From the sequence record MZ779063.1: 64,000 bases of DNA; one strand, written 5' to 3'. The notes below the pieces were generated by a model, which had not been told where the DNA came from, searched no databases, and saw only the letters and a list, made by a program, of their open reading frames with translations. Each line of letters opens with the position of its first letter. Position 1 is the first letter of the stretch. This document shows positions 1-58,400 of the stretch, in pieces. Both the position numbers and the translations under genes were made by a program.

Positions 1-64
1 TTCAATAATCCAGTACAAGATTAAAAAGTTGAATTTGAAAAAGCGTAACGTAAGATATTTTAAT

Positions 65-85
65 TATATATTATAATAATGAAGA
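65..85 (+). promoter_or_regulatory. Early phage promoter TATATATTAT-W4-ATGAAG
   Basis: Same motif and spacing at 4028, 8130, 9329 (+) and 32877 (-); resembles the phiKZ early consensus TATATTAC. Confidence 0.7.
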
Positions 86-133
86 AAGAGATTATCATTA
101 ACTCTTTCTAATAAATTAAAAGGAGAAATTATT

Positions 134-238
134 ATGAAAAACTTAGTATTGAAATTAGTAGCAGGATTTGGATTAGGAATTGTGATGGCAGTTGTTTTAG
201 ACAAGATTGAAGAAATGACGTTCTCTAATTTAAAATAA
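134..238 (+). CDS. 34-aa hydrophobic peptide MKNLVLKLVAGFGLGIVMAVVLDKIEEMTFSNLK
   Basis: Not in ORF track; AAGGAG RBS just upstream, one TM-like segment. Confidence 0.7.
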   Translation: MKNLVLKLVAGFGLGIVMAVVLDKIEEMTFSNLK

Positions 239-264
239 AGGAGGAAAGAGGATAATTGATTTAA

Positions 265-320
265 AGACCTAATGAACATAATGGATCAAGTTCATTAGGT
301 CTATAATTTTCTATGATCCA
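265..320 (+). other. Predicted H-type RNA pseudoknot (intergenic)
   Basis: Perfect 13-bp stem 265-277/290-302; loop bases 282-288 (TGGATCA) pair with 314-320 (TGATCCA). Confidence 0.55.
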
Positions 321-353
321 AACTAAAACTAAAAATAAAAAGGAGAAATTAAA

Positions 354-530
354 ATGTTAGAATTAAATGGAATTGAATTTGTAAATGAAAAGGAAATTAA
401 AGAAGAGGAATTATTATTTAATTATTCAGATGAAGCAAGATATCCATCTGAACAGGCTTATAGAGAAGTAGATTTAATCATTGAGAGCTTCGACAATACA
501 GCTTTCGGATTAAGAAAATGGGGAGTGTAA
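354..530 (+). CDS. 58-aa hypothetical protein (MLELNGIEFV...GLRKWGV)
   Basis: Not in ORF track; AAGGAG RBS at ~340, translated by hand. Confidence 0.75.
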   Translation: MLELNGIEFVNEKEIKEEELLFNYSDEARYPSEQAYREVDLIIESFDNTAFGLRKWGV

Positions 531-535
531 TTAAA

Positions 536-841
536 ATGGTCAGAGAAGAAAAAATCAAACAAATGAAACAAGAATTACAAGCAATTTTAGACAAAGAAAT
601 TAGGTTTAATGGTAAACCAATTTCAAATAAACAATTTGAGAGAAAATTAGAACTAATGAAACAAATAGAAAAGTTAAAATTTGACATTAGATCAGAAAGA
701 TATCTGAGAAATGTCAAAAAGAATAAAATCACTGAGTTTAAGGGTAAAAGTGATTATGCGAAAGCAGGAAGACTACATCAATCTTTCCAAAGTAAAGAAG
801 AGCATAAAATATGGAAAGACGATTTATTAGTAATTCAATAA
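536..841 (+). CDS. Basic hypothetical protein
   Basis: ORF 518..841; ATG at 536 preferred because GGGAG RBS precedes it. Confidence 0.7.
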   Translation: MVREEKIKQMKQELQAILDKEIRFNGKPISNKQFERKLELMKQIEKLKFDIRSERYLRNVKKNKITEFKGKSDYAKAGRLHQSFQSKEEHKIWKDDLLVIQ

Positions 842-849
842 TATATTAA

Positions 850-1059
850 ATGGAGGAATTTAAAATGAAAAAGATTATTAAATTAAAAACTGAGTATGCA
901 TTAATTTTAGGAATGTTAGTTGGACTATTATTAGGATTATTAACTATGAATTTCTTTTTAGCGTTAGATATTATGTTCATGACAACTTTAGCATTTGTAG
1001 GTATGAATCATTATATCGGTGAAAAAAGAATGAATAATAGAAAAGGGGAAGTAAATTAA
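850..1059 (+). CDS. Small membrane protein (2 TM)
   Basis: Hydrophobic; likely start ATG 865 after GGAGG. Confidence 0.7.
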   Translation: MEEFKMKKIIKLKTEYALILGMLVGLLLGLLTMNFFLALDIMFMTTLAFVGMNHYIGEKRMNNRKGEVN

Positions 1060-1060
1060 T

Positions 1061-1255
1061 ATGCAGAATAAAATTAAGATAAAACCATGGATAGTATTTT
1101 GGACCGTATTTATTATTGGATTTATAGTTGGAGAAATTCTAGGTTATGTAGAAGGTAAATCATTGTTTGTAGGTATCGTATCAGCATTTATTTGTTTAGG
1201 AATTAATTATATGGTTGGAGAAATTAGAAGAGATATTATTAGAAATAGAAAATAA
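1061..1255 (+). CDS. Small membrane protein (2 TM)
   Basis: Two hydrophobic segments, AAGGGG RBS. Confidence 0.7.
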   Translation: MQNKIKIKPWIVFWTVFIIGFIVGEILGYVEGKSLFVGIVSAFICLGINYMVGEIRRDIIRNRK

Positions 1256-1282
1256 AAATTAATTAAATTATAAGGAGTTGAA

Positions 1283-1396
1283 TTGGATATGTTATTAGAA
1301 AACTTCATTACAATTATCGTGTTACTTGGCTTAATGAAATTTACAGGTTGTTTCAAATTTATGAAAGAAATCTGGTCTAACAAAGGTAACAAATAG
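1283..1396 (+). CDS. 37-aa hydrophobic peptide (MDMLLENFITIIVLLGLMKF...)
   Basis: Not in ORF track; AAGGAG RBS with TTG start (in-frame ATG at 1289). Confidence 0.65.
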   Translation: MDMLLENFITIIVLLGLMKFTGCFKFMKEIWSNKGNK

Positions 1397-1474
1397 CAAT
1401 AAAAGAGTGGATTATTTTCTATGATCCACTCTACATATTTAAATTAAAAAAAAAAACGAAAAGAGGAAATTAAA

Positions 1475-1981
1475 ATGAAAAAATTATTAATGACATTAGC
1501 ATCAATCGCTTTAATCGCAGTTATCGGAGCAGCAGGGATATTTGGTTATAGTAGTTTTAAAAGCTTAACAGTCAATAAAGAAGATAGTAAGACTGAAGAA
1601 GTATCTAAAAAGAAAGAAGACAAAAAAGAAAAGAAAGAACAAGAAGAATCAGATAATGTAGAAGTAAATCAACAACAAGATCAAACTCAAGAAGTAAATA
1701 ATAATGAACGACAAAATCAAACTACAGAAGATAATAATACAAATGTACAACAAAATCAACAACAAGAACCAGTAGTTGAAGAGAAAACTCAAGTAACAGA
1801 TAATGAAGGTAATAATATAGATGATATGGATTCAGAAGAATTTATTTCTAAATATACGGAAGGAATGGATGAAGAAGAAGCTCAAACAGTAAAAGACATG
1901 GCTGAAGAAGATTCAGGATATGAAGATTTCTTACGTGGACAAGTAGAAGCTAGACAAAATGGTCAAGGCGGAAATTACTAA
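1475..1981 (+). CDS. Membrane-anchored/secreted protein, paralog 1
   Basis: N-terminal MKK + hydrophobic helix ending GYSSFK, Q/E/N-rich linker. Confidence 0.85.
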   Translation: MKKLLMTLASIALIAVIGAAGIFGYSSFKSLTVNKEDSKTEEVSKKKEDKKEKKEQEESDNVEVNQQQDQTQEVNNNERQNQTTEDNNTNVQQNQQQEPVVEEKTQVTDNEGNNIDDMDSEEFISKYTEGMDEEEAQTVKDMAEEDSGYEDFLRGQVEARQNGQGGNY

Positions 1982-2004
1982 TAAGAAGAAAAGAGTGAAA
2001 TGAA

Positions 2005-2472
2005 ATGAAAAAAATCTTAAGTATTTTAACAGCGATAGCTTTAATCACAGTTATCGGAGCAGCAGGAGTATTCGGATATAGTAGTTTTAAAGAATTAAAT
2101 AATAGTAAAGATAGTCATAAAGTTGAAACAAGTAAAAAACAAAAAGAATTAGATGATAAAAATAACACTCAACAACAAGAACAAAATACATCAAAAGAAA
2201 ACAACAATATCCAACAACAATCAAATGAAGATAGCCTAACAGAAAATATGGATGAAGAATATAAAAAACAACAGGAAATGTATGAAAGGCAATCAAAAGA
2301 TGAAGCTCCAGAACCGGATTCTATAATTGGCAACCCACCAAAAAATTATGAAACTCCAGAAAAAGATAAAATAACTATAAGTGAGTTAAGAGAAGTTTTA
2401 GGCGATGATATTGATGAAAGTAAAATTGATGAAGCAAAAGCGTCTGGCGAATATATTAATGATGAAGAATAA
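2005..2472 (+). CDS. Membrane-anchored/secreted protein, paralog 2
   Basis: N-terminus nearly identical to paralog 1 (VIGAAGVFGYSSFK). Confidence 0.85.
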   Translation: MKKILSILTAIALITVIGAAGVFGYSSFKELNNSKDSHKVETSKKQKELDDKNNTQQQEQNTSKENNNIQQQSNEDSLTENMDEEYKKQQEMYERQSKDEAPEPDSIIGNPPKNYETPEKDKITISELREVLGDDIDESKIDEAKASGEYINDEE

Positions 2473-2503
2473 AAAATAAATAAAAAGAATAGAGGAAAAT
2501 AAA

Positions 2504-2980
2504 ATGAAAAAATTATTAGTATCATTATCAATCTTAGCAGTAATTGTAGTATTAGTAGCGGCAGGTGTGTTTGGATATTCAAAATATAAAGAAGTAGAAA
2601 TGAAACAACAGAATTTAGAAACACAATTAGAAGAAAAAAATTCCAATGAGCAAACTAATGAAAACGATCAACAACAAGAACAAGCAAATACAAATGAATC
2701 TCAAAATCAAGAAAATAGTTCAACAAAAAACAATAACGACAATAAACAAAAAGTATCTAGAGACAATGTATTTGACTATGCTTTAGCTGCAGTAAATGAA
2801 GTAGGTGACGCTGATTTAATGAAATTCCAAGAACCTTCTTACAGTGATGGTGTATGGACAATTGACACTAATAATAAATCTGGTTCAGGATCTAATACTA
2901 TAAAAGTATACGATGATGGCTGGGTACAGATATATGATGGATCTGGTGAAATAGCTCATGAAACAAAAATAGAACTATAA
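2504..2980 (+). CDS. Membrane-anchored/secreted protein, paralog 3
   Basis: Same anchor (AAGVFGYSKYK), Q/N linker, distinct globular C-domain. Confidence 0.85.
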   Translation: MKKLLVSLSILAVIVVLVAAGVFGYSKYKEVEMKQQNLETQLEEKNSNEQTNENDQQQEQANTNESQNQENSSTKNNNDNKQKVSRDNVFDYALAAVNEVGDADLMKFQEPSYSDGVWTIDTNNKSGSGSNTIKVYDDGWVQIYDGSGEIAHETKIEL

Positions 2981-3000
2981 TTATTAAGGAGTGTTGATGA

Positions 3001-4027: not shown

Positions 4028-4068
4028 TATATATTATAAAAATGAGTAATATTAATTAATATTACTCA
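4028..4068 (+). promoter_or_regulatory. Early promoter followed by perfect 26-bp palindrome
   Basis: TATATATTAT 4028-4037; TGAGTAATATTAATTAATATTACTCA 4043-4068. Confidence 0.7.
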
Positions 4069-5540: not shown

Positions 5541-6038
5541 ATGTTAAAAAATAAAAATATTGAAATTAACCAAGATATTATTAATAATGAATTAATGAAA
5601 ACAAAATATATGGAAGAGGCGATGTTAAAAGTGTTAAATCAAGACCTAGTAATCAATTTAAGATTTTTAAAAGATAATCTACTATCTGGATGGGAATTTG
5701 AAAATAATGTAGCTGAATTTAAAGAAATAGAAAAATTCTATGATCCGTCATTAAAAATAAGACTAATTTTTAAAGTTAATGAAAAAGAAATCAAGTATAC
5801 ACTTAATGAAGATATTCAAGATATGTTAGAGAATTTCATGATTAAGAAAGCTGATGATGAAAGAGCATGTGAGATTATTAAATCTGTTATTGAGTATGAA
5901 TTCTTTAAGAAAGAAAATAAAAAAGATCATGAACTTGATATGAATACAATAGATTTATTAATGGGTAAAGTTAATGAATTAAAAATTAAATACAATATCA
6001 GTAATAAACAAGCTAAGAAATTATATATAGCATTTTAA
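5541..6038 (+). CDS. Hypothetical protein
   Basis: 165-aa ORF with RBS. Confidence 0.8.
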   Translation: MLKNKNIEINQDIINNELMKTKYMEEAMLKVLNQDLVINLRFLKDNLLSGWEFENNVAEFKEIEKFYDPSLKIRLIFKVNEKEIKYTLNEDIQDMLENFMIKKADDERACEIIKSVIEYEFFKKENKKDHELDMNTIDLLMGKVNELKIKYNISNKQAKKLYIAF

Positions 6039-8129: not shown

Positions 8130-8149
8130 TATATATTATATAAATGAAG
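8130..8149 (+). promoter_or_regulatory. Early promoter TATATATTAT-ATAA-ATGAAG
   Basis: Match to the recurring motif. Confidence 0.7.
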
Positions 8150-9328: not shown

Positions 9329-9372
9329 TATATATTATAATTATGAAGAAAGATATTATCATATATCTTTCT
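9329..9372 (+). promoter_or_regulatory. Early promoter plus conserved 5' hairpin
   Basis: TATATATTAT 9329-9338; hairpin 9347-9372 homologous to 83-109. Confidence 0.7.
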
Positions 9373-12359: not shown

Positions 12360-13019
12360 ATGAGTAATTATTTATATCGTTTTAACAAAGAGAATGTAAA
12401 TATCTTCTATCATAAAAGGACTAATAATGGTCATAAAATGTTATTTAATAATAGTAATGATAAAGATAGATCTATATACTTAATAAATACTGATGAAGAA
12501 ATCAATAATATGGAACTAGTATCTAAATATATTGCTGGAAAAGTATTTGAAATACTAAACCAAGAAAATATGAAAATAGTACATATGGATTTCTTTAATA
12601 GTAAATTAGAATTCTTTATAAGTAGATCATCCAAGAATAAATATATAATGAATATGTATTTTAGTTTAAAAAGTTATAATGATCTAATAGAAAATGAAAA
12701 AGAATTTATAGATAGTGTTAATGAGCTTAATTTAGACTTTTTAAAATCAGTTTCTTTAGATCAAGACAATAATCATGTATTAGATATGACATTAATATTT
12801 TTAATAGATAAAAATAAAATAGATGAATTTATTAAAAATCTATTTTACATTAATTATGTAAAGATAATAGAATTTATAATAGATACTATATCAGTATATG
12901 CAGATGATTACAAGAAATTTAATGAAGAAATAAATATTCTTTTGGATCATAGAAATTTTGTAGAGGAAATAACATATAAAGAATATAAAAAGATAATGAC
13001 AAAAGAGATGTTTATTTAA
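12360..13019 (+). CDS. Hypothetical protein, C-terminal tag family member 6
   Basis: Ends EITYKEYKKIMTKEMFI. Confidence 0.8.
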   Translation: MSNYLYRFNKENVNIFYHKRTNNGHKMLFNNSNDKDRSIYLINTDEEINNMELVSKYIAGKVFEILNQENMKIVHMDFFNSKLEFFISRSSKNKYIMNMYFSLKSYNDLIENEKEFIDSVNELNLDFLKSVSLDQDNNHVLDMTLIFLIDKNKIDEFIKNLFYINYVKIIEFIIDTISVYADDYKKFNEEINILLDHRNFVEEITYKEYKKIMTKEMFI

Positions 13020-15055: not shown

Positions 15056-18052
15056 TTAGTTTCTTCCATAAATATAAGAGTTTAGGAACCAAGCATTTCC
15101 TTTTTGACCTGGTTTAACACGAGCTCGTATAGCTACTGAAGCTATAGATTGTTGTGGTATTCCTAAATCAACAATAATCTCTTTAAATTTAGTTTTAGTA
15201 ACACTAGTAGAAGTGTCTTTAGGTATTGATACAGTTTTATCAAAAATTACACCATTCTGTTCGTTAAAAGAGTCTACTTTAATATCTATACCACATTGTG
15301 GAGTAGCATACCATATACCAATGTGTAACCATCTAGTTTCATGTTGACCGTATAATGTCATAGCACGTCTAAAGTAGCTACCTGTAGTCTTATCACTAAA
15401 CATAAATGCATTACCGACATTTTTAAATCTAGGAGTACCATTAGACATTAAATCTTGCACACCAGGTTCTGAACGTACATAAGCTGTAGTGAATCGTGGC
15501 ATACCATTGTATACTAAATAACCACCATCAGGGCGTTTGATAGTGATACCGCCTTTAACTTCTCCCATAGCATCTAACATAGTTTGAACAACTATATTTT
15601 TAGACATTAAATTAGTAATAGCAGCTTCTTTAATAGTAGCTCTACCATTAGAAATTATTACATCACCATCATTAATATCAACCATCTTAGATTTTAATTT
15701 AATACTATTAGGATCAATATCAAAAGAAGATAATTTATCATTAGATGAAGATGACATAGTAATACCATCAGCTAATAGAGATAATGCAGAACCCATTTTT
15801 TCTATTTTAGTTTTATCAGCATTGTAAGTTTCTTTAGTAACACTTAGAGCGATATTATTTTCTGTTTGACTAATTCTACTTTCCATATTAGTAATTCTAG
15901 CATTACTATCTTTAATAGACGGTTGCCAAGCAGTAGATTTATTACCTTCTTCAACTTTTAATCCTTCAATATCAACAGACATTGGGAAAGTTCCATTTTT
16001 ATTAATAATCATATTAATTAATGTGTCAGTTGTAAATGAATCATTAGGAATAAATACTACTTCTATTAATGTTAAAGCAGAAGTATCATCAAACGTAATA
16101 TTACGTGAATCTTGACCTTTAGCAACACCATTAACAAAAGTATTAGTTATAGTTGAATTAGGTATACTAATATCAACATTAGTTAATGTACCAGTTTTCT
16201 TTTCTAAGTTAAAGCTTAATATGTGTTCACGTCTATTTCTAACTTTATCTAATTTAAATTTAATACCTTGACCGTTAGCAGTTAAAGCTGTATTAAGTTC
16301 TCCGTATTCTAAATAATTAGTTTTAGTTAAAGTTACAGAACCAATTGGTGTAATATTAGCAATGCTAATTAAGTTCATACCGCCAACTGTAATTTTACCG
16401 GCTTCTGTAACAGCATAACCATTAGAAATACTGTCAATAGATTTTTGAATAGCATCTTTAATATTCGATTGAGCTTCATTATATCTCAAGTAGTTAGTAT
16501 TAAATTGAGCTATTTCTTCTTGAGTGGCTACACCGTCAATAATAGTATTAGTGATATCTTGTATTAGTATATTATATTTCTCATTAAATAAATCATATTT
16601 ATTTTTTAAATCTGTTTTTACTGAATTAGCCATCATTTTATTAGGATAAAGTGTATTAAAGATTTTATCTATTTCAGCTTTATCTTTATCAATAACATTT
16701 TTCTGTTTATCAATAGCAATTCTTTCAGCATTAGATATAATACCATCTTTGAAAGCTTCAGTAACTGTATCACCTAAACCTACAGCATTCTTTTCGATAT
16801 TAGTTATTTTACCATTAATAGTTTTATTATAGTTTTCTAACATATTATCATAATCTTCAGGTGCAGCTGTCCAGTCAGAAGACACACTACCTCGTTCAAC
16901 TTTAACTCTAGCAATATCAAATGTACCACTTAATCCATTAAGGTCAGTATCTACTCCAAGAAGCAATTTAGTATTATTTCTTCCAGTTAGTGTTTGTTTA
17001 TATACAAATGAATATCTATGCCATTCTTCATCAATATCTAAATACTTTTCAGCGATTGGTGTAGAATAATTACCAGAAGGATCAATGAAGTAACAATAAT
17101 CAAGTCTATTAAATGTATCTGATCTAAAATCAAATGAAATAGTATAAGTCTCATTATATTCTAGTTTAAAACCATTATAACTTTGAGCTCCTACTTGTCC
17201 TTCAATACCTTCAGTATTAATTGTAAAATAACTTTTACCGTTACTGTCTTGTCCAAAAGTTAAAGCATTTGGGTTTGATGAATTTAAAGCATCCGGTTTT
17301 AACAACCAATTACCTGAAACAGCTAAAGAATTTTCTAATAAGTTTTTACCACCAATAACAATACCGTCAATTTCAGATTTAGAAACTGTTTGTTCTATTA
17401 AGTCTGCAAATTGAGATATCTGACTTTCAAATTCAGTTACTTTATTATTAACCGTATCTATATCAGCTCTAGTAACTGTATCTTGTAGAACTCTAGCTGT
17501 TTGTTCTCTAAATGATTCTAATTTAGTAATACTATCATTAATTTCATTAAGAGTGTAATCAGTAGCTATACTCTTAATGGACTCTGCAGTTTGTTCTACT
17601 TTAGTACTTAAATATTGTATAGATGATTCATATTTATTAACTTTAGACATTGCTATTGATAGGGACTCTTCATTAGATGAAACTCTTCCATTTAAAGAAT
17701 CTAGATTACCTTTAATATCAGAATCCCATCCACCTTCAGCAACGCTATCAATATAGTCAATACTTAGTTTTTGGTATTTTCTTAATTCAGTTTTTAATGT
17801 ATCAAGTGTAACATAGTTAGATAAATCTAAATCAATATCGTGACTACCATCTAAATTTCTTAATTTTTCTATTAAATTATCATTTTCTTTATCTAAAGAA
17901 TCAATACTTGTATTTAAGACATTAATTCTATTTTTATTATCTTCTGACAGATTTTTAATGCTATCTTGTTCTTGTAATAAAGAATTGAATTTCGATTTAA
18001 TAGAATTTATTTCTTCATTTATTTGAAGAAGATTTTTTTCTTTATCTTCCAT
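15056..18052 (-). CDS. Tail fibre / receptor-binding protein (998 aa)
   Basis: Coiled coils alternating with GGxNL...KVExGxxxxxWxxxxxD beta-sandwich modules; C-terminal RWLHI...DLGIP domain. Confidence 0.75.
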   Translation of the reverse strand: MEDKEKNLLQINEEINSIKSKFNSLLQEQDSIKNLSEDNKNRINVLNTSIDSLDKENDNLIEKLRNLDGSHDIDLDLSNYVTLDTLKTELRKYQKLSIDYIDSVAEGGWDSDIKGNLDSLNGRVSSNEESLSIAMSKVNKYESSIQYLSTKVEQTAESIKSIATDYTLNEINDSITKLESFREQTARVLQDTVTRADIDTVNNKVTEFESQISQFADLIEQTVSKSEIDGIVIGGKNLLENSLAVSGNWLLKPDALNSSNPNALTFGQDSNGKSYFTINTEGIEGQVGAQSYNGFKLEYNETYTISFDFRSDTFNRLDYCYFIDPSGNYSTPIAEKYLDIDEEWHRYSFVYKQTLTGRNNTKLLLGVDTDLNGLSGTFDIARVKVERGSVSSDWTAAPEDYDNMLENYNKTINGKITNIEKNAVGLGDTVTEAFKDGIISNAERIAIDKQKNVIDKDKAEIDKIFNTLYPNKMMANSVKTDLKNKYDLFNEKYNILIQDITNTIIDGVATQEEIAQFNTNYLRYNEAQSNIKDAIQKSIDSISNGYAVTEAGKITVGGMNLISIANITPIGSVTLTKTNYLEYGELNTALTANGQGIKFKLDKVRNRREHILSFNLEKKTGTLTNVDISIPNSTITNTFVNGVAKGQDSRNITFDDTSALTLIEVVFIPNDSFTTDTLINMIINKNGTFPMSVDIEGLKVEEGNKSTAWQPSIKDSNARITNMESRISQTENNIALSVTKETYNADKTKIEKMGSALSLLADGITMSSSSNDKLSSFDIDPNSIKLKSKMVDINDGDVIISNGRATIKEAAITNLMSKNIVVQTMLDAMGEVKGGITIKRPDGGYLVYNGMPRFTTAYVRSEPGVQDLMSNGTPRFKNVGNAFMFSDKTTGSYFRRAMTLYGQHETRWLHIGIWYATPQCGIDIKVDSFNEQNGVIFDKTVSIPKDTSTSVTKTKFKEIIVDLGIPQQSIASVAIRARVKPGQKGNAWFLNSYIYGRN

Positions 18053-22108: not shown

Positions 22109-25100
22109 TTATCTCACATCACTTTCAAAATTACTTAATGACATACGCACTATAGATATTTGACCTAATTGTGCACTTCCTGTAGAACCTGTTATAGAAA
22201 GCTGTATCAGTAAATATTTATTAAAATTATCAGGAACTCCTAAATCTATAGTTGCTATTCTTGTTGAAGTATCAACTTTAGAACTTCCTGTTACCCCTAT
22301 TTCTTTATGCATTTTTATATCACTATTTGTTTTCCAACCCATACCATCACTAAATGTAATATAAAGATTATTGCCTTCAGTTACTGTTGCCCTGTAAACA
22401 AATTTTAGATATCTTCTATTATGATGATAACTAAATACATTTAGTGTCGCTTTGTCTTTACCTGATGATTCATCTAATTGTGCATTATCGTAACCATATT
22501 TATAAATATCTCTATAAATATTATATGTTCCAGCTCTAGTATCGTCTAATACTATAGGTCTAAAGTTTTTTTCATTGGTAGCATGAGCAGATCCACTAAC
22601 CCAGTTCCAAGTTCTAACTCCAGGCATAGTAGGCATAAAGTTAGTTTCAGATAAGAACATACCTTCAACCATTTGGTCAACACCGTTTTTTCTTATATTT
22701 AATCCAGTTGAATTTATTTCCACAAAATTATCAGTATCTAGAGCACTTTTTGATATTCTCAATACATCATTTGTAAATGAAAGATTGCCTTTATTATTAT
22801 ATATTTTAACTTTATCCGTATTTAGATCTATACTACTAGATATCATTTTAATTGATTCCGAGTTCATAGTTATCTTACTTGATAAAGAACTAGTGCTATA
22901 TTTATCTAATGCCGAAGGTGTCCATGGTTTTAATTGATTACCTTTTTCTAATTTTGGAAGAGCGTAATAAAATACAGTTCCATCATTATAAGCATCAGTT
23001 TTATCATAGTTGTTATAACGTAATAGAAATCTTAGATAATTGGTTCTTCCATTACTAGAGTTTCTAGGTATTTTAGCTGTAAAACTATATCTAACCCATT
23101 TATCAAATATAAATTCACTAGCAGGTATCTCAACTACACCAAATTTAGGATTGGTAGTTTGTTGTATATTCTCATAAGTTGCCACCTCAAAATATATCTT
23201 ATAAGTAAGGAATTTTCTAGCTGTTGCAGGAATGTATATATAAACAGAGCCTGTTACTTCATCTCCAATACTAAATTGACCTTCTTGACCTACAGGTAAA
23301 TAGCTTGACATTACTGCAGGCCATGTTGTTCCAAAGTTATTATGTTTATATTTGAAGACATCTTTTACTTTATTAATATCAAAACTAGTATCGTCATTAG
23401 AATCTTTCGACTCAATTACAGTTATATTTTCAAAAGAGGCAGTTATATCAGCATTATCTGTAGTTCCTGCTTTTGCAGCATAAAATAACAACTGATTAAT
23501 TTTATCCTCATTAGGAGTAGTAATTTCTATTACGTTTCTTTTAGTTGTGCTAACAGGATAATCTATTCTATTAACTGAACTAATTTCAGGTAATGTATCC
23601 AAATCAGTTGAATACCCTGAACCTTTATAAGGATATCTATATGGGTACAATGAAATTAAACCTTCACTATTTTTCCCAGATTGTATATTATAATCAAATG
23701 CTACTTTATATTTAGTATTCTTTTTTAGATATCCATTTAATGGAAGAGTCATTCTTTTATAAGTTCCTCTGGATACATTGTTTACACGATAAACTGAACC
23801 TAAAGCTAGATTGTTATCGGTATTAAAAGTCATATCATCTTCAGAAGCTATTGAAAATCTAGGATTTTTAGGATAATTTCCTTCATCCAGTCTTATATTT
23901 TTAAAGTAAAACTTACCATCTGAATATGGTGAAACGGAGGCTATTATTAATCTTAATTGAGTCATTCCGCTTAAATCTGAGCTAGTTAGATTGAACGTAG
24001 TTTGGAAAGTACTCCAATCATCATTGATATCATTTTCAGCAGATATTGTATAACTTAAAGGATTGATTGAACTTGATGATTTGTTCACACGTAAACTTAC
24101 AGTAATAGACCCTTTAGTAGTTTCTAAAGATTTTCTAACATCAAAACTAAAAGTATAAGTACCTGGCTTAATTTTAGATAATTTTAAACTTCCATCTGCA
24201 TCTTTATAATCAATATTAGATGTTTGCCATTGTTTCCATCCTTCATTAGAATTTGAAATTATAGAAAGATAATCTCTATAATTTGTAGTTGTATCTGTTG
24301 GATTTGATTCAGTTGATCCACTAAATGTGTATGTCCAGTAAGGTGAGTCAATCTTATCCGCAAAGTTTAAATTGTTTGATGTATCATCATCATTAGTTTT
24401 CCAACCTTCCCATCCATTTCTAAGATCAGAGTTAATAAGTGCGTTATCTGCATTAAGATAATTATTTATTTTATTAACAGATAACTCAATAGAATCTGCC
24501 TTTTGATCTATTTTAGAAGAAACAGTCGATATTGAAGTCTCAATATCTTCGGGAGCTGGTGTCCAATCAGTAGATTTATTACCTTTTTCAAGTTTAATCC
24601 ATTCTATAGTTGATAGATAATTTCCATCTTTAGGCATATCGTATATTGTTAATAACTTACTTAAATTTCTTGAAGATTGTTTGGCAACCCCAGTACCTAT
24701 CCATAAACCCTTTTTAGAATCATATGTTAAATTACATAAGTTTGTATAACCGTCATCAATATAAGCACTAAAATAGTGGTCTTTATTATTTGTATTACCT
24801 TTTATTGTAACTGTATAAGTCTCATCCACTATCCAATCTAATGACAAATTATATGGTTTCCCATATAATGTATGATTTACATATTTATTATTTTTACTAT
24901 CTAAAACTAAATTTCTTCCACCAATTCGAATATCATTAATTTGAGAGTTTACATCTTCGGGAGCTGGAGACCAGTCAGTTGCTTTATTACCCTTTTCAAT
25001 TTTAATATTTTCAATAGAGAATTTATCTCCATTGTTATTGTTATAAGCATATATAGCCCATCTAGTGTTAGTTCCAGAAGTCTTAGTTATTTTAGAAGTG

Positions 25101-34013: not shown

Positions 34014-36557
34014 ATGGCTATAGAATTTAATGATTTTAATAGATTCAGTAAAGATGATTTAAGAAAATACAATCCTCTCTATTTTTATAAAGCATTTACT
34101 GAAGAAGATATAGAAAATTTAGATGATGTTATTAAATATTGTCAAGGTCTAATTATTAAAGATCAGTCAATGGCAGATAAATTAGAATCAAATGACTCAA
34201 TGATGGAATCTGATTTATATATAAGAGCTAAAGATGATACGCTCGATGATTACTATTCAGTTTTCGATAGAGATAGTATATTAAGAACGTATAAAGAAAA
34301 AAATCCATACTATGGTAAATTAAGAAATTTATATGATATTGATCCATACGATTCAAGAACGACTAGCGATTTTCAAATAATAAAAGCACTTAATAAAACT
34401 TTAGATAATAAAGAAGAATCTATATTATTGGAAAGTTATACAGAATCAGTTGAATATTTTAAAAAAGTAACTCATACTAGAGCGTTTAATAATCAAATAT
34501 ATTACAGAGAAATGTTTTATATGTATCTAATTAATGCAACTCTACATAGATATATTAATAAAACTATGTATAGAATATTCGATGTTGATAGATATACAAG
34601 GAGAGATCTTAAAAATGCATTTATATCTAATGGTTTGGATTACTTTGATGAGTTCCCACTTGAATATCAAAGAAGAACTTACAAAAGATTAAATGATTTA
34701 ATTAGAAATAAAGGCACTAATGAAATATTTCCTATAATTGAAGAAATATTCTCTATTAATTCTATTGATATTAATAAATATTATCTAGCTAAGCATCCGA
34801 ATGATTTGAAATTTTATAAAACTAATGTAAATGATAATTTCAATCCTTATAAAAATAACCAATATAGCTACAATGAAATTGTCGATCTTGATCCATATTG
34901 GAGAAATACTAAAGAAGAAGTTATGGATAAAGCATTTAACGTTATACAAACTAAATATTTGTCTACTGATGCTGTTATAGATATAATTAATAACAGTAAA
35001 TCTTTATCATTCTTATACAGTTTAATTAACTTAATGAAAGAAGATAAAAATATTATCGAAGATGACAGTTTCAATATGACTAATACAAGAATTAGTTCTA
35101 GAAAATTTAATGTCTTTGACGGAATTGTTACACTTAATACACTTGTCATAAATTATATTAAATGGAATGATAACATTAAGAATGATAAAAATATGAATAT
35201 ATATGCGTATAATTTTAATTCAGATATAAAAGATACTGTAGATGATATTCGTAATTATATTTATTCTAGACAATTTGATAAATCAGACTATACTGATTTT
35301 GCTAGAGAATTAAATTTCCTTAATATTAAGAAATTTAAAAATAGAAATACATTAAGCTATGAAGATATCATAAATGAATATGAATCATCTGACTTAGCTC
35401 AAAGACAATTTAAATTCATCTCTGAAATGTTAACTGGTGAAAATGGATCAACTCAATTAGAATATTATATTGAAAATGATTTAATTATTGATGGTATGCG
35501 TTATTTATGGACTCAGATATCAAAACCAGAAAGAAACTTCTTATTCAAAAATATTTCTTATTATGAAAACTTTATGAAGATATATAAGAAATTCTTAAAT
35601 GTAATGGTAAGAGATGGAAGAATTGATAGAGAAGACGTATATAAAATAATGATTGAAGACGAATCAATTGATAAAGAATTAAAAGATTTTGTTAAAGTTA
35701 TGAATGTTAGATTTTTAAATGAATCTTACGATAGATATAAAGACAATAAGAATGCTGAAAATATTGAAAATATAGTTACTGCAGTCAGAAAATCTATAGA
35801 CTATTCAATTAAGAATAATCAATATACTTCTAAAAAACAAATATCTAGATATCCTGCATTAAAATCATATATTTCAGATATATTAGTTTATGATGATTCT
35901 GATAAAGATTTAATAAATATTTATGATATTATTAATATGTATAAGCATAATGAAAAATTCCGTAAAGAACTAGAAGAATTAATATATAATGCGAATGATC
36001 CTCATTTAAGAGAAAAATTTATTACATTGCATAAACAACTATTTATCAATAATTCTAGTAATGATGTATTTAATGGATTTAAGACCTATTCAGATTATCT
36101 TAAATTTAAAGAACCTGATTTGTATTATTATACTATTGTAGAATCAGAAATATATGATGAAGATACATTTGATAGAGAAACTATCTTTAGAGAAAGAATT
36201 TTTGAATTAGTTAGTAGTATTGATAATCATTTAAATTTAAAAGAACAGTATTTCACTAATAGTAATTTTGTAGGTATAGTTAATTTTATCAGAGATTATA
36301 TTACTATTTTAATTACATTATTTAAATCTTATTCAACTGATTTAATTTATACTAGTCTATTATTTAAATTAGATGATAAATTTGAAAATAGTATACATTT
36401 AATAGACGAAGCCAATGTTAAATATAGTGGAACTTCTAAAAAAGTAGATAAAATCAATACACTTGACAATAAAAATATCATTGATAAAATTAATAGAAAA
36501 GAAAGTATTGAGACTAAAGATGAATTAAAAATCTCAATAATTAAGAAGGGAGATTAA
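34014..36557 (+). CDS. Baseplate wedge protein (T4 gp7/P2 gpI-like)
   Basis: LIRNKGTNEIFPIIEEIF wedge motif; structural cluster. Confidence 0.55.
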   Translation: MAIEFNDFNRFSKDDLRKYNPLYFYKAFTEEDIENLDDVIKYCQGLIIKDQSMADKLESNDSMMESDLYIRAKDDTLDDYYSVFDRDSILRTYKEKNPYYGKLRNLYDIDPYDSRTTSDFQIIKALNKTLDNKEESILLESYTESVEYFKKVTHTRAFNNQIYYREMFYMYLINATLHRYINKTMYRIFDVDRYTRRDLKNAFISNGLDYFDEFPLEYQRRTYKRLNDLIRNKGTNEIFPIIEEIFSINSIDINKYYLAKHPNDLKFYKTNVNDNFNPYKNNQYSYNEIVDLDPYWRNTKEEVMDKAFNVIQTKYLSTDAVIDIINNSKSLSFLYSLINLMKEDKNIIEDDSFNMTNTRISSRKFNVFDGIVTLNTLVINYIKWNDNIKNDKNMNIYAYNFNSDIKDTVDDIRNYIYSRQFDKSDYTDFARELNFLNIKKFKNRNTLSYEDIINEYESSDLAQRQFKFISEMLTGENGSTQLEYYIENDLIIDGMRYLWTQISKPERNFLFKNISYYENFMKIYKKFLNVMVRDGRIDREDVYKIMIEDESIDKELKDFVKVMNVRFLNESYDRYKDNKNAENIENIVTAVRKSIDYSIKNNQYTSKKQISRYPALKSYISDILVYDDSDKDLINIYDIINMYKHNEKFRKELEELIYNANDPHLREKFITLHKQLFINNSSNDVFNGFKTYSDYLKFKEPDLYYYTIVESEIYDEDTFDRETIFRERIFELVSSIDNHLNLKEQYFTNSNFVGIVNFIRDYITILITLFKSYSTDLIYTSLLFKLDDKFENSIHLIDEANVKYSGTSKKVDKINTLDNKNIIDKINRKESIETKDELKISIIKKGD

Positions 36558-40112: not shown

Positions 40113-40955
40113 TTATTTAAAGTTTCTATAGAAATCATCAAGTCCATTAAGAACAGATTCTTCTAAGAACACTTTGATAGTTTTATTACTTTCTCTAATT
40201 GAAGCTAATTGAGAACCTTTATCATAACTGATATTAGATTCATCAACTCCAGCAAATCCCATATCTTCTGCAATGTATTTCACATTATCTGAATTTTCTT
40301 TAATATAAGTTAAAACTTCTCTAGGAGAGAATTCAGTAATTTTACCATTAGCAAACATATCAATTGATTCATTTACCATTTGTAAATCATTAGGATTATA
40401 GTTATTATGACCTTCTGAAATAATATTTTGAATATAAGAATCTTGATGAGATGGAATTACTACCCAATCATAGCAAATTAATCTTAAAGGCTTAGTAACT
40501 TCAACTTCACCAGAAGGAGTTCTATTAATTTTACTGAAACCACGCATTGAGAAAGATACGTCAGATTTTTGTCTAATTAAACCTTTCATATCTTTACCAG
40601 CTGCTGTTTGAGCTGTTTCTACTTCTCCCATTAATTTATTACCATTCCACCAAGTTCTAGTAACAATATGAGAAATATTGCGTTGATCAATATACATTTG
40701 ACGTTTAGGTTCATCACTTAAGGGATGTCCTGATTCCCCGTAAAAAGTTCTTCTTGCTAATTTTTCTTGTATTACTGGACTATCTAAACCACTTTGAATA
40801 ACATCTTTACGATAAACACGACCATTACGGTTTTGTCTATCCGCTTCTTGTAACTCAGCAATGAATCTAACCGATTTATTATTATCTTGAACTACTTCTG
40901 GTTGAGAAGTTGTATTAGATTCATTAATAAGATAAGCTTTTATATCTTTAGACAT
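40113..40955 (-). CDS. Prohead core protease (T4 gp21-like)
   Basis: QEADRQNRNGRVY, GESGHP, ISH, SFSMRG, D...PS motifs. Confidence 0.9.
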   Translation of the reverse strand: MSKDIKAYLINESNTTSQPEVVQDNNKSVRFIAELQEADRQNRNGRVYRKDVIQSGLDSPVIQEKLARRTFYGESGHPLSDEPKRQMYIDQRNISHIVTRTWWNGNKLMGEVETAQTAAGKDMKGLIRQKSDVSFSMRGFSKINRTPSGEVEVTKPLRLICYDWVVIPSHQDSYIQNIISEGHNNYNPNDLQMVNESIDMFANGKITEFSPREVLTYIKENSDNVKYIAEDMGFAGVDESNISYDKGSQLASIRESNKTIKVFLEESVLNGLDDFYRNFK

Positions 40956-42917: not shown

Positions 42918-44522
42918 ATGTTAAACCCAAACAGAATTAAAGATGAATTTTCGGTTCGTTTAGAAGATATCGAAAACTCTATTAATGAATCATATAACCT
43001 TAGTACTATCGGCGGAGATTTCGCTGCTATTGCTACTGACGATGCAGTATTTGAAAGCTATAAAGATCAATTATTAGAAGGTTTTGACGCTGCTGAAGGA
43101 GAAGCTTTAGCTGGAATGTTAGATAATACTCGTGAAGAAATCTTAATGGAATCTTCAATGGGGCCTATCCAACCTTACGCTTCACTTTCTATGCCTATTT
43201 TAGTTAAACTTTGGGCTCGTTTAGCTTTAACTGAAGCTTTACCAACTCAAGTTGCTAACAAACCAAACTTTACAGTTCCAATCTTAACTCCATATGTTGT
43301 GGATGCAGATGGTAACAAACATGCTTTACCAGAATCAATTAATAACACACCTGAAACTTTAGTTGGATTAGTTCAAATTAAAGAAGATATCGCAGTTGAA
43401 GGTGGAAAAATTACTGATTACGATTTATTTAATGGATTAAAAGAAGGTAAAGAAGTTCGTAAAGGTATTGACCGTTTAGACCGTAAATTCAAAATCGTTG
43501 AAGCTAAATGGAGTGATTCATTCGATGAACGTACTTCAGCTGCAGGATTCGTTGAATTAGGTTCTAATGTAGTTAAATTACAAGACAATGATACATTAGT
43601 AGGACAAATTAAATATCCTACAAATGGTGATGGTGAAGTTGAAACTGACACTGTCTTAGGTAAAGTAGATGTTTCTACAGGTGAACTTACTTTGACTTCA
43701 GCTTCAGGTAAATTAACTGATGTTAAAGTTAAAGGTTATGTAGCTTCTGAACAACATACTTCAGCTACAAACGTTGAACTTGGTTTAACTCGTAAAGACG
43801 TTGTTATTGATACAGCTCAACACATCGAAGCTACAGTACCTCTTGAAGTAATTCAAGATATGAAAGCTACTTATGATATCGATGGAGTTGCTCGTTTATC
43901 AGAAACTATGTCTCAATTATCTAGTCAAAAAGTTGACTTAGACATTATTGAATTCTTAGATCACGAATATAAAGAAACTGATGCTAAATATCACTTCAGC
44001 TTCGATGTATTCCCACATAGTGATTACAGTGCTCATCCTAAAGATTGGTTAGAAGGTCTACGTGAAGTAATTGACCACACTACTCAATCAATGAAAAACG
44101 ATTACAAATTATATGACGTTCAATTCGTTATCGTTGGTAACCCATTAGACGTTCGTTTAATCCCTAACGTTTCTTGGACTTTCAATGGTGGAGACCGTAA
44201 CGCTGATGCTTATTCTAACGGAATCAAAATTAACTATTCATTAGGTGCTGCTTCAGGTACTGCTAACTACCGTATTATCGGTTCTGACTTAGTACGTCAA
44301 GGTGAATTAACTATTATTGCTATTCCTCAACAAGATAACTATAAAACATTCATGTTCTACCCTTACACATTCAATGTTGTAAATGGTGGAGGTTACCTAA
44401 ATACTCGTAACCCTAATGTTCCTAACATGATGATGACTCGTAGATATACAGTTGAATCATTTGTTCCGATCATTGGACGTATTACAATCAAAAACAACAA
44501 CGGTTCAGTATACGCTCGATAA
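42918..44522 (+). CDS. Major capsid protein
   Basis: 534 aa, strongly biased codon usage, cleavable N-terminal propeptide (ILME-S), C-terminal MMMTRRYT...GRITI, position after protease/scaffold. Confidence 0.85.
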   Translation: MLNPNRIKDEFSVRLEDIENSINESYNLSTIGGDFAAIATDDAVFESYKDQLLEGFDAAEGEALAGMLDNTREEILMESSMGPIQPYASLSMPILVKLWARLALTEALPTQVANKPNFTVPILTPYVVDADGNKHALPESINNTPETLVGLVQIKEDIAVEGGKITDYDLFNGLKEGKEVRKGIDRLDRKFKIVEAKWSDSFDERTSAAGFVELGSNVVKLQDNDTLVGQIKYPTNGDGEVETDTVLGKVDVSTGELTLTSASGKLTDVKVKGYVASEQHTSATNVELGLTRKDVVIDTAQHIEATVPLEVIQDMKATYDIDGVARLSETMSQLSSQKVDLDIIEFLDHEYKETDAKYHFSFDVFPHSDYSAHPKDWLEGLREVIDHTTQSMKNDYKLYDVQFVIVGNPLDVRLIPNVSWTFNGGDRNADAYSNGIKINYSLGAASGTANYRIIGSDLVRQGELTIIAIPQQDNYKTFMFYPYTFNVVNGGGYLNTRNPNVPNMMMTRRYTVESFVPIIGRITIKNNNGSVYAR

Positions 44523-47870: not shown

Positions 47871-48007
47871 TTATTATCACAAATTTTTATTATTCCATCT
47901 TAACTAATTTGTATAATAGAATTTCAAGAATAATTTTAAATTAGAATTTTTTCTAAATTTAATAGAATAATATAATATATAATAATAAAACGGATGGTGA
48001 AAATAAA

Positions 48008-55410: not shown

Positions 55411-58400
55411 ATGGCAGACTTTATGTATCTCCATCCTTCTGTACAAACACAAATCAACTCTTATCAAAATAATTACCCTACAGCTGAAGGTCCTGTAACA
55501 TTATTTGCTGCAGACACTTTTGAAAAAGGTAAAGATGGAGTTATTGATTTTGTAGGTACTGAAGAAGAATTTATTTTTAAATATGGTGAACCAAACTATA
55601 CGAAATACGGTCAAGCTGCTTATAACCTCGTGAACTGGTTACGTTCTGGTGGTCAAGCTTATGTATTACGTGTATTACCTAAAAATGCAACTTACTCTCA
55701 TGCTATATTAAACGTACAAAGTAGAGTACAAAAAGATGGTAAAAAAGTTTTAACGGATGCAAATGAATTAGTTAAAATTGATGATGTTAAAATTCGTCCA
55801 ACAATTGCATTTGTTAAGAAAAATAATAGAAATATTGAAGAATTAGTTAACGAAATCACTTTAGATCGTGGTAATGAACAAACAGTAGACGGTTATAATA
55901 ATAACTTCTTACTTTTAGCTTATCCAAATGGTCGTGGTGAATCTTATAATGATTTAGGTATTCGTTTAACTTTAAATACTTCATATGACACTAGTGGTCG
56001 TACTGAACGTGTTTATAACTTAGAAGTACTTGAATTTGACGAATTTAGTAATGTTAATGTAATTGATGGCCCATTCTTAGTTACATTTGATCCAGATTCA
56101 ATTTCAGATACTGGTGAATCAATGTTCATCGAAGAGGTTGTTAATCGTTATTCTAAATACGTTAACATCAAATTTAATCTAGAAAACTTCCAAAATCTAG
56201 CTAAAGAAATTAATCCTAATGTACATCCTGCAAGCATTGATGTTATTTCTGGTAAATCTAAAGTTAGTATTGATGGAACTCCTGAGACTTTCTACTCAGA
56301 AAAAACTAAACAATCTGAAGATATCCATATCACTTTACACCGTTACAATAATAAAGGTGTACCAGTAACTATTAGTGGTAACCCTGTATTGAATAAACCT
56401 GATTTTAACGATCCAGTTGAAAATGCATTAATTTCATTAGACAATGGTATGCGTGAAAAAACTTTCGTTACAGATTCAGATCGTCTTTCTTACATGAGAG
56501 ATCAATACAAAACTTTACGTTCTGATAATTTTACAGAATTTAAATCATTATTAAATAAAATTATTGTACCGGGTAATGGTTTATTTGAAGATGATGCAGG
56601 TAGCTTACCTAAAACTATTAAAGATAATTTAGTTTCTGCAAAATTAACACAAGAAGATGTAACTGCAGATATCAATGATGAAGAAGCAGTTGAAGAAGAA
56701 TTAGCTGGAAAATTCAAACCTTCTGAAATTAATTTCGGTGGTAAACCTGCTGGAGCAGCTGAACGTTTAGTTCAAGATTATAACACTTATTTTGAAGATT
56801 CAAATGAAGAAAATCTTTCTGCAGTACTTTCAGGTACAGAAGAAATTGGTTCTTTATTATTAAACGAATTCTTAGATAACGGTAATAAACTTAACGCTGC
56901 TTACGAATTAGTTTATAAATCTAATTCAGGTATTTCTTCAAATCCTAAATATCAAGCTGATGTTAAAGAATTACGTGATGTATTGGCTCAAAAAGACCAA
57001 ATCCGTATCTTTGGTATTCAACATAAATCTAATATCTTAGATATTACAAATGATATTGCTGAATTACGTATTGGTATGAAATCAGTTACTAACTTAGAAG
57101 GTATGTCTAAAGTATTAAATGATACTGAAACAGAATTACGCTATGTAATTGACAACTTAATGCCTGCTGTTCGTGAAGGACTTCCTAAAGAAGCAGTTGA
57201 CTTTATTAACACTGTTCCTGATGGTGATGATGAAGATACAGAACGTGATTTAGTTTCTCCAGAAGCTATGTTAAACTCATTAGCTGACAAACAAATGTTA
57301 GTTGACGATATTAACTTAGGATTAATGGAAGACAATGCTGCTAACCGTGAAGAAGTATTCGTAGCTTGTAATGAAATCGCTAACCAATTAGTTGATTTAA
57401 TTAACAGAGCTGTTTCAGTAGCTTCTGTATATAAAGTTGCTCGTGCGGTACGTATTGCAGCTAATACAATCTATTATGATATTTCTATCTTCCGTAAAAA
57501 TATTGATGAAATGATTCAAACTCGTTCTAACTATACAGAAAGAGATATTACATTGAATGCTCATCAAAATATTGAATTAGCTGTTGCTAACTTGAATAAA
57601 GCTAACTCTAAATACTTCAATACTAATCTTATTGATGTATCTAGTCCAGTTAAATTCTTATTCGGTTCTGATGGTGACTTCTCTTATGCTGAAGACATTT
57701 CATATAAAGATCGTAAAAACTCTGTTAACCGTGAATTAATTAAAGCTTATAAAGGTTTAATTGATGAAGAAATTACAAACACTAAAGCTTATCCATTTGA
57801 TGTTGTTCTTGATGCTCGTTATTCTAACGAAGTTAAGTTCGCTATCTCTGAATTAGCTAAAAATGTTCGTAAAGACTTTGTATTCTTAGCTGATACGGTT
57901 ACTGATCGTTACCCAGTTAGTCCTGAAGATGCAATTAGATGGAGAAAAGAAGAATTTGCTGTTTCTTCTGAGTATACAGCTATTTACTCTCAAGATTTAA
58001 CTTACTATGATGAGTACACTGGTAGAGACATTCGTTTCACACCAACTTATCGTTTAGCTTCAATGATTCCTTATCAAGCTGTTAACTCTGGTTTACACTT
58101 CCCAATTGCAGGACCTAGACGTGGACTAGTTGAAGGACATAAAGCTTTATCTTGGGCTCCTAATGAACCTTATAAAGAAAAACTTTATACTTCTAAAATT
58201 AACTACATTGAAAAAGATATTGATAGAACTAAATTTGGTGCACAAATGACTTCTATTAAATCTGATGGTCCATTATCTAACTTGAACAATATCTTTACAT
58301 TAAATCAAATTAAACGTGATGCAGAAACTCTTGTTTCTGATTACCAATTTGAATTAAATGATGATGAAACTCGTTCAATTATGGGTACAGAGTTGAATGC

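Follow-up and report, generated by a model that had tools for sequence, protein, structure and literature searches.

A conserved RNA hairpin and an invariant 11-nt box in a predicted early-region module of S6-like Staphylococcus jumbo phages

Introduction

Jumbo phages of the AR9/PBS1 lineage have uracil-containing DNA that is transcribed by two unusual multisubunit RNA polymerases, and to our knowledge the only cis signals described so far in this lineage are an early and a late promoter. The present study concerns a short intergenic element at positions 265–320 of a 64,000-nucleotide (nt) stretch of sequence record MZ779063.1 (the window), for which a reading of the letters alone (hereafter, the sequence-only reading) had proposed an H-type pseudoknot, made of two helices, S1 and S2, in the first early transcript. 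In the comparative analysis described here, S1 proved to be a conserved RNA helix, and the 3' strand of S2 was found to belong to an 11-nt box, TTCTATGATCC, repeated throughout the genomes of this phage group. The best explanation, held tentatively, is an attenuator-type hairpin followed by a separate signal of early transcripts.

Results

The locus and its genomic setting

The first 3 kb of the window are 99.8% identical to the Staphylococcus jumbo phage vB_SauM-UFV_DC4 (DC4) and 99.4% identical to phage S6, and eight further S. aureus and S. lentus jumbo phages align to the window at 76–93%. The product of the major capsid gene (42918–44522) shares 47% identity with Listeria phage LPJP1 and 40% with Bacillus phages AR9 and PBS1; therefore, the genome was placed in the AR9/PBS1-like lineage. 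From these identities, the window was assigned to the S6/DC4 group of Staphylococcus jumbo phages, relatives of the uracil-DNA phages AR9 and PBS1.

The features discussed below are collected in Table 1. In AR9, the early promoter consensus is AAATATATATTAT-(6N)-G+1 and the late one is AACA-(6N)-T-A/G (PMC5312081). A putative upstream promoter of the early type lies at 62–81, and its match to the AR9 consensus predicts the transcript start. By analogy with AR9, the element would lie within this predicted early transcript, between a small open reading frame (ORF) and a 58-aa ORFan. The intergenic location and the predicted early transcription proposed by the sequence-only reading were thus upheld, but to call the transcript the first is meaningless, because the window begins mid-genome (at the equivalent of DC4 186001) and because DC4 and S6 have, about 635 bp further upstream, a paralogous copy of the element that comes with an early promoter, a small membrane ORF and a hairpin of its own.

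Table 1 Features of the window relevant to the 265–320 element (S1, S2, proposed helices; SD, Shine–Dalgarno sequence; vRNAP, virion RNA polymerase; CDS, coding sequence)
Position	Strand	Feature	Basis
62..81	+	Predicted vRNAP early promoter AATTATATATTAT, 6-nt spacer, start G81	AR9 early consensus at 12 of 13 positions, plus G
83..109	+	5'-terminal hairpin of the predicted early RNA, AGAAAGAG / CTCTTTCT	Read from sequence
134..238	+	34-aa small membrane-type ORF, first gene of the early unit	ORF call
239..264	+	SD-like purine tract (AGGAGG, AGAGGA) and start-stop mini-ORF TTG-ATT-TAA adjoining S1	Sequence
265..302	+	S1, 13-bp hairpin with 12-nt loop, terminator/attenuator type	265–277 / 290–302 perfect
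282..288	+	Proposed S2 5' strand TGGATCA in the S1 loop	Exact reverse complement of 314–320 TGATCCA
303..312	+	U-rich tract following S1, ATAATTTTCT, which leads into the box; would form L3 of the pseudoknot	Invariant in all type-1 copies
309..319	+	Conserved 11-nt box TTCTATGATCC, holding 6 of 7 nt of the S2 3' strand (314–320)	Exact-match counts
320..353	+	A-rich unstructured spacer, (AAACTA)x3.5, SD AGGAG at 341–345	Sequence; tandem-repeat scan
354..530	+	58-aa ORFan downstream of the element, ATG at 354	ORF call; no family
1404..1432	+	Second box copy, plain 12-bp hairpin AGAGTGGATTAT / TTTCT loop / ATGATCCACTCT; box 1417–1427 as loop and 3' arm	Alignment A2
5736..5746	+	Box copy in CDS (ORF 5541–6038), codons F-Y-D-P	Conserved throughout the S6-like genomes, SA1 among them
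12944..12954	-	Box copy antisense to ORF 12360–13019 (sense D-H-R, near C-terminus)	Exact match

Copies of the element resembling 265–320, termed type-1 modules, were aligned from 10 S6-like phages (15 copies, 13 of them distinct). Read mapping in four DNA metagenomes added variants and cassette junctions and gave no transcript ends. Each of the 10 genomes carries one to three type-1 copies, spaced 635–1,450 nt apart as separate cassettes, and the gene downstream is a 58-aa, 104-aa or 169-aa ORFan depending on the copy, none of them with a family. Cassettes are evidently gained and lost. In AH12, the small ORF and the element are absent and the homologue of the 58-aa gene is fused straight to the early promoter and leader, and the same junction, with the 58-aa gene directly behind the early promoter, was found in one metagenome contig (AH12 locus L004, 3115–3230, against window 82–356; junction 136>362 in metagenome run X6). 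The breakpoints fall within two near-identical ribosome-binding sequences, consistent with homologous recombination between them. In S6, unlike in DC4 and the window, copy B has the same stem-loop as copy A, which indicates gene conversion between the copies. On this comparison, the 265–320 element appears to be one copy of a repeated intercistronic module of the early region of S6-like jumbo phages.

The S1 hairpin

The two arms of S1, AGACCTAATGAAC (265–277) and GTTCATTAGGTCT (290–302), are exact reverse complements, as had been read from the sequence. Folding of positions 240–360 with RNAfold gave −24.2 kcal/mol (z = −3.2, none of 200 shuffles as good), of which S1 accounts for −18.3. Among the 13 distinct copies, eight of its pairs are invariant, two vary by wobbles only and three show compensatory double changes, with 98.8% of the cells paired against 21–42% in slid controls; in the RNAalifold consensus, S1 is the sole helix. 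All of the wobbles are G.U on the plus strand, so the structure has been selected in the sense-strand RNA. S1 is a real, conserved sense-strand RNA helix, far beyond chance.

S1 also fits the style of the genome, in which hairpins of 12–15 bp with AT-rich tails are common: about 75 perfect terminator-type hairpins of at least 10 bp were counted in DC4, in families sharing CCTAA/TTAGG arms, S1 among them. Its tail, AUAAUUUU, contains five U in eight positions, yet starts with AUAA, and resembles the tails of other hairpins of the genome, including one between convergent genes. The consensus terminator scan of the window did not list S1, presumably because its 12-nt loop exceeds the 3–8 nt allowed by the scan. 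In AR9, predicted hairpin terminators were reported to terminate strongly (PMC5312081).

The hairpin families of DC4 reuse the arms CCCTAACCTTA, ATCCCAATACCT and GAGGTAATGACA, in 6–12 copies each and mostly with 6-nt TTAATT/AATTAA loops; examples lie at DC4 50995, 74921, 79861, 130425 and 200525 (about window 14525), and several are apparently common to SA1.

The 11-nt box

The box TTCTATGATCC occurs in 10–12 exact copies in each of the 10 S6-like genomes, against a Markov-3 expectation of about 0.2 and none for the reversed-pattern control; its single-substitution neighbours occur at most twice each. Nine exact copies were found in Listeria phage LPJP1 and three in AR9, and the box is invariant in the metagenome contigs too. 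About 27 distinct box loci were seen in the S6-like phages. A literature search for the 11-mer returned unrelated primers only, and the box is apparently undescribed; the IMG/VR scan with a 14-mer gave lone chance matches only.

The contexts of the box are diverse: it stands after S1, in a plain covarying hairpin, in coding sequences and in places without any partner. The plain hairpin at 1404–1432 has 12 pairs in alignment A2, two compensatory and three wobble-only, with 96.8% paired. In LPJP1, the box directly follows terminator hairpins with T-runs of 10–12 T, and both in LPJP1 and at 89.6 kb in DC4 the order after the box is G, A-run, hairpin and T-run. It occurs in early leaders of SA1, AR9 and probably LPJP1, and one SA1 copy lies in a divergent promoter region. 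Moreover, 7 of the 11 boxes in DC4 and 7 of the 12 in SA1 lie no more than 1.8 kb downstream of a same-strand early-promoter-like site, with 13% of random positions falling within 1.5 kb of such a site, and the orientation is mostly sense (about 8 sense to 1 antisense in DC4, 9 to 2 in SA1).

In-CDS copies were considered as pure protein conservation of F-Y-D-P, which is only partly tenable: synonymous variants of the box, such as the A/T-richer TTTTATGATCC, have no occurrences at all. At the same time, DC4 has a synonymous variant in place of one in-CDS copy of SA1, which suggests that the protein sequence may account for some of the in-CDS copies, and the antisense copy at 12944–12954 may be a coding by-product, since its sense codons GAT-CAT-AGA are A/T-rich (judged from base composition, with no codon count).

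Upstream complements of the box reached a shuffle p ≤ 0.05 at 7 of 26 loci, including type 1, type-2 hairpins and the SA1 leader (TGGAT ... ATCCA), and were absent from all nine LPJP1 copies. Pairing of the box is thus recurrent, not universal, and may modulate access to it; because most of the approximately 27 loci and all nine LPJP1 copies have no partner, pairing cannot explain the conservation of the box. The RNA form UGAUCC is complementary to GGAUCA, which we take to precede the anti-SD sequence in the 3' tail of Bacillales 16S rRNA, and the S1 loop (282–288) repeats that sequence; a UUCU-UGA stretch presumably resembles rrn boxA weakly.

One box-containing hairpin, on the minus strand of DC4 (locus L239, 70602–70911), is antisense to both neighbouring genes. 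Beyond it, about 170 nt of non-coding DNA, richer in G+C, reach as far as a bidirectional terminator. This non-coding stretch has been conserved in PALS_2 and, in part, in another S6-like phage, and base pairing in the hairpin is better on the strand that does not carry the box; the locus may be a small RNA gene.

The second helix, S2

The complementarity on which the pseudoknot was based is present: S2 comprises 7 perfect bp, with L1 = 4 (278–281), L2 = 1 (289) and L3 = 11 (303–313) as originally given, and S1 and S2 have the crossing topology of an H-type pseudoknot in the window. GGATCA is kept in 10 of the 13 distinct copies, with 6–7 bp of S2 retained there. Five of the seven pairs never vary, and the two independent substitutions observed, G283>A in copy A of MarsHill and Madawaska and G284>T(U) in copy A of AH12, PB50 and Machias, both disrupt G-C pairs; no compensatory and no wobble-type change in S2 was found among the 13 distinct copies, and S2 is absent from the RNAalifold consensus of the type-1 copies. 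The covariation anticipated for the pseudoknot in related phages was therefore seen for S1, in its three compensatory pairs, and not for S2. The 3' strand of S2 owes its invariance to the genome-wide box, of which it forms a part.

The argument that two such helices are unlikely by chance likewise holds for S1 and fails for S2. When a 12-nt loop is set against a 40-nt flank, complementarity of at least 7 bp arises by chance in 1.8% (shuffled) to 3.8% (composition null) of cases, and 20 of the 212 hairpin orientations with loops of at least 7 nt in the sister genome DC4 reach it; with about 75 strong hairpins per genome and a rate of 2–4%, one S2-like match is expected by chance. S2 alone is statistically unremarkable. 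Moreover, a nested alternative of about equal merit pairs 247–253 with 306–312 (helix P0) and 240–242 with 317–319; it is 94.5% and 87% paired across the copies, likewise without covariation. The nested alternative and S2 were judged mutually exclusive on steric grounds, because only A313 would join the base of S1 to the S2 3' strand, with the loop 13 bp away. The S2 duplex is worth −8.3 kcal/mol before any pseudoknot penalty, and the nested extension adds −5.9. The sequence-only reading had named plain terminator behaviour as one outcome that would speak against a pseudoknot; this comes near to the best reading of S1. S2 would be at most a facultative masking helix for the box and would not be the reason for its conservation. 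An H-type pseudoknot acting as such a mask is possible, though rather unlikely, and the comparative data neither require nor support it.

The box in AR9

In AR9, for which transcript starts have been mapped, the exact box copies lie at 250969–250979(−), 127565–127575(−) and 22549–22559(+). The first of these, at gene g292, occupies +45..+55 of the mapped early start 251023, whose annotated early promoter is at 251030–251042; at g292, transcription of the box as part of an early leader is certain, and the g292 RNA declines after 5 min. AR9 Tables S2/S3 contain no start at any of the three copies, 251023 being the sole start listed near the g292 copy. Since the AR9 boxes have no start of their own, a promoter reading is disfavoured, and by this analogy the box is probably not a promoter.

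Three related candidates were rejected. As a degenerate early promoter, the box has 7 of 10 matches and the wrong spacing. A host sigma-A promoter using the TATAAT of type-1 copies would have no −35, and this TATAAT lies outside the common box. Peptides of a leaderless mini-ORF starting at the ATG within the box are not conserved.

Neighbouring features

The AGAGGA (247–252) and TTG-ATT-TAA (256–264), the A-rich tract and the ribosome-binding site before the 58-aa gene are all present as read from the sequence. AGGAGG follows directly after the stop of the small ORF, and then comes the two-codon start-stop ORF with its stop adjoining the base of S1, also in other type-1 copies. The pattern (T/C)TG-NTT-TAA is kept in most of them (TCG in MarsHill B), and a ribosome on this mini-ORF would open the 5' arm of S1. 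With S1 enforced, the probability of being unpaired at 320–325 is about 0.9–1.0.

No Pfam or PHROG family was matched by the 34-aa ORF (134–238), for which paralogues and orthologues of 48–56 aa are annotated in DC4, AH12, LY01 and others. Such proteins of 34–56 aa, with a single N-terminal hydrophobic helix, form the first ORF behind an early promoter in the window and at 1343–1513 of L001, 2533–2700 of L004 and 2538–2684 of L009; the window copy is the shortest of this family. The 5'-terminal hairpin upstream reads AGAAAGATA / TATCTTTCT in the DC4 paralogous copy, with its pairing preserved.

Besides 62–81, the core TATATATTAT-N6-G has its T at 4028, 8130 and 9329 on the plus strand (spanning 4028–4044, 8130–8146 and 9329–9345) and at about 32868 on the minus strand; a further TATATATTAT core lies at 47972 (−). 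A hairpin lies at the predicted +1 or no more than two bases from it for the cores at 62–81, 4028 and 9329. DC4 and SA1 contain 29 early-promoter core sites each, 24 of them on one strand. The AR9 late pattern, as AACA-N6-TA, lies upstream of ORFs 15056–18052(−), 34014–36557, 40113–40955(−), 42918–44522 and 55411–58563; the AACA-N6-T-A/G matches upstream of presumed late genes (long ORFs) were spotted by eye, with no count against chance, and suggest that both AR9 promoter classes may be conserved in S6-like phages. A recurrent ribosome-binding module, AGGAGATGAAAAGGAT(A)ATG, was found upstream of window positions 4695, 8179 and 9778 and in the SA1 genome, in which the 11-mer AGGAGATGAAA occurs 16 times.

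Discussion

The results are best explained, with a confidence that falls somewhat short of even, by S1 as an attenuator-type hairpin followed by a separate cis signal of early transcripts, the box. Most likely, S1 would attenuate transcription and/or stabilise the 3' end of a short early RNA behind the tiny membrane-protein ORF, some polymerases passing it into the downstream ORFans. A factor conserved in the phage lineage would then read the box on early transcripts, the most probable role of the box being post-transcriptional control of early mRNAs by turnover, shut-off or processing. What we infer in this explanation is the attenuation at S1, the action of the box at the RNA level and the kind of factor that reads it.

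Several observations weigh against it. By bacterial standards, the tail of S1 is a weak U-tract. Its loop, of 9–12 nt with a conserved GGAUCA, is atypical next to the usual 6-nt AT-only loops, which hints that the loop may have a role of its own, possibly in S2. An exact requirement for 11 nt is long for a protein RNase site, and a search of DC4 and SA1 for a trans-acting complementary RNA of the phage, with G.U allowed, gave none. Beside terminators, the box stands in either orientation relative to the hairpin, and some boxes are situated past a terminator that looks efficient, or within the lysin gene at a great distance from predicted early promoters; all of these arrangements are better fitted by a site acting in DNA. 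Finally, the search for RNA-seq data of S6-like phage infections yielded no infected-culture run, and the RNA runs matched less than 0.1 of the words, as contigs only.

Among known systems, the shut-off of T4 early mRNAs by RegB and RegA (reviewed in PMC3014915) offers a functional parallel for such a signal. The target of RegB is a 4-nt sequence, GGAG, and that of RegA a degenerate AU-rich sequence at ribosome-binding sites. Like the signals of RegB and RegA, the box is a short cis signal in early mRNAs, mostly in leaders or intercistronic regions, that could mark them for a phage factor; unlike those, it is 11 nt long, exact and situated away from the ribosome-binding site. S1 itself recalls the terminators of other jumbo phages with their own multisubunit RNA polymerases, namely the phiKZ hairpin followed by TTAT... 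and the terminator motifs of 201phi2-1 (PMC10914365, PMC11512511). There too, hairpin families of conserved sequence have a conserved 3' flank, just as S1 shares its CCTAA/TTAGG arms with other hairpins and is followed by an invariant flank. However, the sequences are unrelated, and the box flank is also found free of hairpins, inside hairpins, in early leaders and in coding sequences.

The rival that survives best, unlikely as we consider it, is a true H-type pseudoknot of S1 and S2 as the functional unit, a structure that, placed ahead of the A-rich leader, would serve as an operator or would block nucleases and so control translation or stability of the downstream ORFans, with the box kept here for its pairing with the loop. 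The perfect 7-bp complementarity, loop lengths that look sterically sufficient (estimated from standard A-form geometry) and a duplex energy that, before any pseudoknot penalty, exceeds that of the nested extension are all compatible with it, and so is the unusual, long, G/C-containing loop of S1, whose GGATCA is better kept than its 5' part, which varies in length and sequence. At other loci, the AUGAUCC strand is demonstrably paired, with covariation, to an upstream GGAU-containing strand, and upstream complements were seen at the 7 of 26 loci mentioned. Against this stand the lack of covariation in S2, whose two 5'-strand substitutions break G-C pairs, a 3' strand that is invariant at about 27 mostly partnerless loci as well as in LPJP1, the chance rate of 2–4% per hairpin, an RNAalifold consensus with S1 only and the 94.5% conservation of a helix that excludes S2. 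The T4 gene 32 operator, to which the sequence-only reading had likened the element, similarly has a pseudoknot followed by an unstructured A/U-rich leader up to the ribosome-binding site, but here S2 does not covary and each genome has several copies of the element; what follows these copies is one or another small, unrelated ORFan, so an autoregulated single-stranded DNA-binding protein is not involved and that comparison had to be given up.

A broader combination of the two ideas is rather doubtful: TTCTATGATCC might be the signal of an early-transcript control system across the PBS1/AR9-like uracil-DNA jumbo phages of Staphylococcus, Listeria and Bacillus hosts, a third cis class beside the early and late promoters, gated in type-1 modules by a true H-type pseudoknot in which the S1 loop masks the box.

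Less support was found for the box as an operator or roadblock in DNA, bound by a lineage-conserved protein for early shut-off or termination, with the RNA helices as overlapping terminators, an explanation that we hold to be quite unlikely. An exact asymmetric 11-bp site is typical of DNA-binding proteins, and this explanation would accommodate the boxes beside terminator T-runs in both orientations, the in-CDS copies with fixed synonymous sites, the SA1 copy in a divergent promoter region and the boxes that closely follow early promoters in AR9, SA1 and LPJP1. Against it speak the strong sense-strand bias in the S6-like phages and the repeated occurrence of the box within RNA-type helices with G.U wobbles, and no candidate protein was identified.

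Promoter-early stem-loop (PeSL) cassettes of T4-type phages (PMC2839356, PMC4122927) resemble the module in being short, repeated and intergenic, in a hyperplastic early region, and in joining a stem-loop attenuator to a conserved signal ahead of ORFans; they too are tied to cassette gain, loss and recombination. A cassette of this kind, in which S1 would end a short early RNA and the box, as a third-class phage promoter, would restart transcription, could account for the order of stop codon, stem-loop, conserved box, A-rich leader, SD and start codon, for the gene conversion between cassettes and for a stem-loop position that varies relative to the box as in the five PeSL subclasses (PMC2839356); internal promoters are, moreover, known in AR9 early operons. 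It is nevertheless very unlikely. The PeSL signal is a sigma-70 promoter of demonstrated activity, whereas the box is not sigma-70-like, resembles neither AR9 promoter class and, judged in the relative AR9, is probably not an active promoter, with a mapped start at none of its three copies there and the g292 copy inside a mapped early leader. Several boxes are also followed by a terminator within the next 10–25 nt, and matches to the late pattern already stand upstream of several presumed late genes.

A mimic of type III toxin–antitoxin RNAs (ToxI, AntiQ or the pseudo-ToxI of phage phiTE), acting in counter-defence as the sequence-only reading had suggested, shares with them only a possible pseudoknot in an RNA from a phage early region and is effectively refuted on membership: Tandem Repeats Finder gave only the 6-nt A-rich repeat at 320–340 and no array of about 35 nt, the element copies being separate cassettes, the eight neighbouring ORFs contain no ToxN/AbiQ-family or single-stranded DNA-binding gene (Pfam, PHROG), Rfam at E ≤ 10 returned no relevant family for window 1–3000 and the 70.6-kb locus of DC4, there is no sequence similarity, and what is conserved, the lineage-wide box, also occurs in phages that infect other host genera. 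Self-cleaving ribozymes such as pistol were likewise rejected, as no Rfam match was obtained.

The case illustrates that a convincing-looking pseudoknot can arise where the loop of a terminator happens to match a frozen neighbouring signal. As for that signal, an exact 11-nt box found in phages of three host genera, in early units and near terminators, and with no transcript start in AR9, points to a missing regulatory layer in these phages, which may be early shut-off, attenuation or RNA processing.

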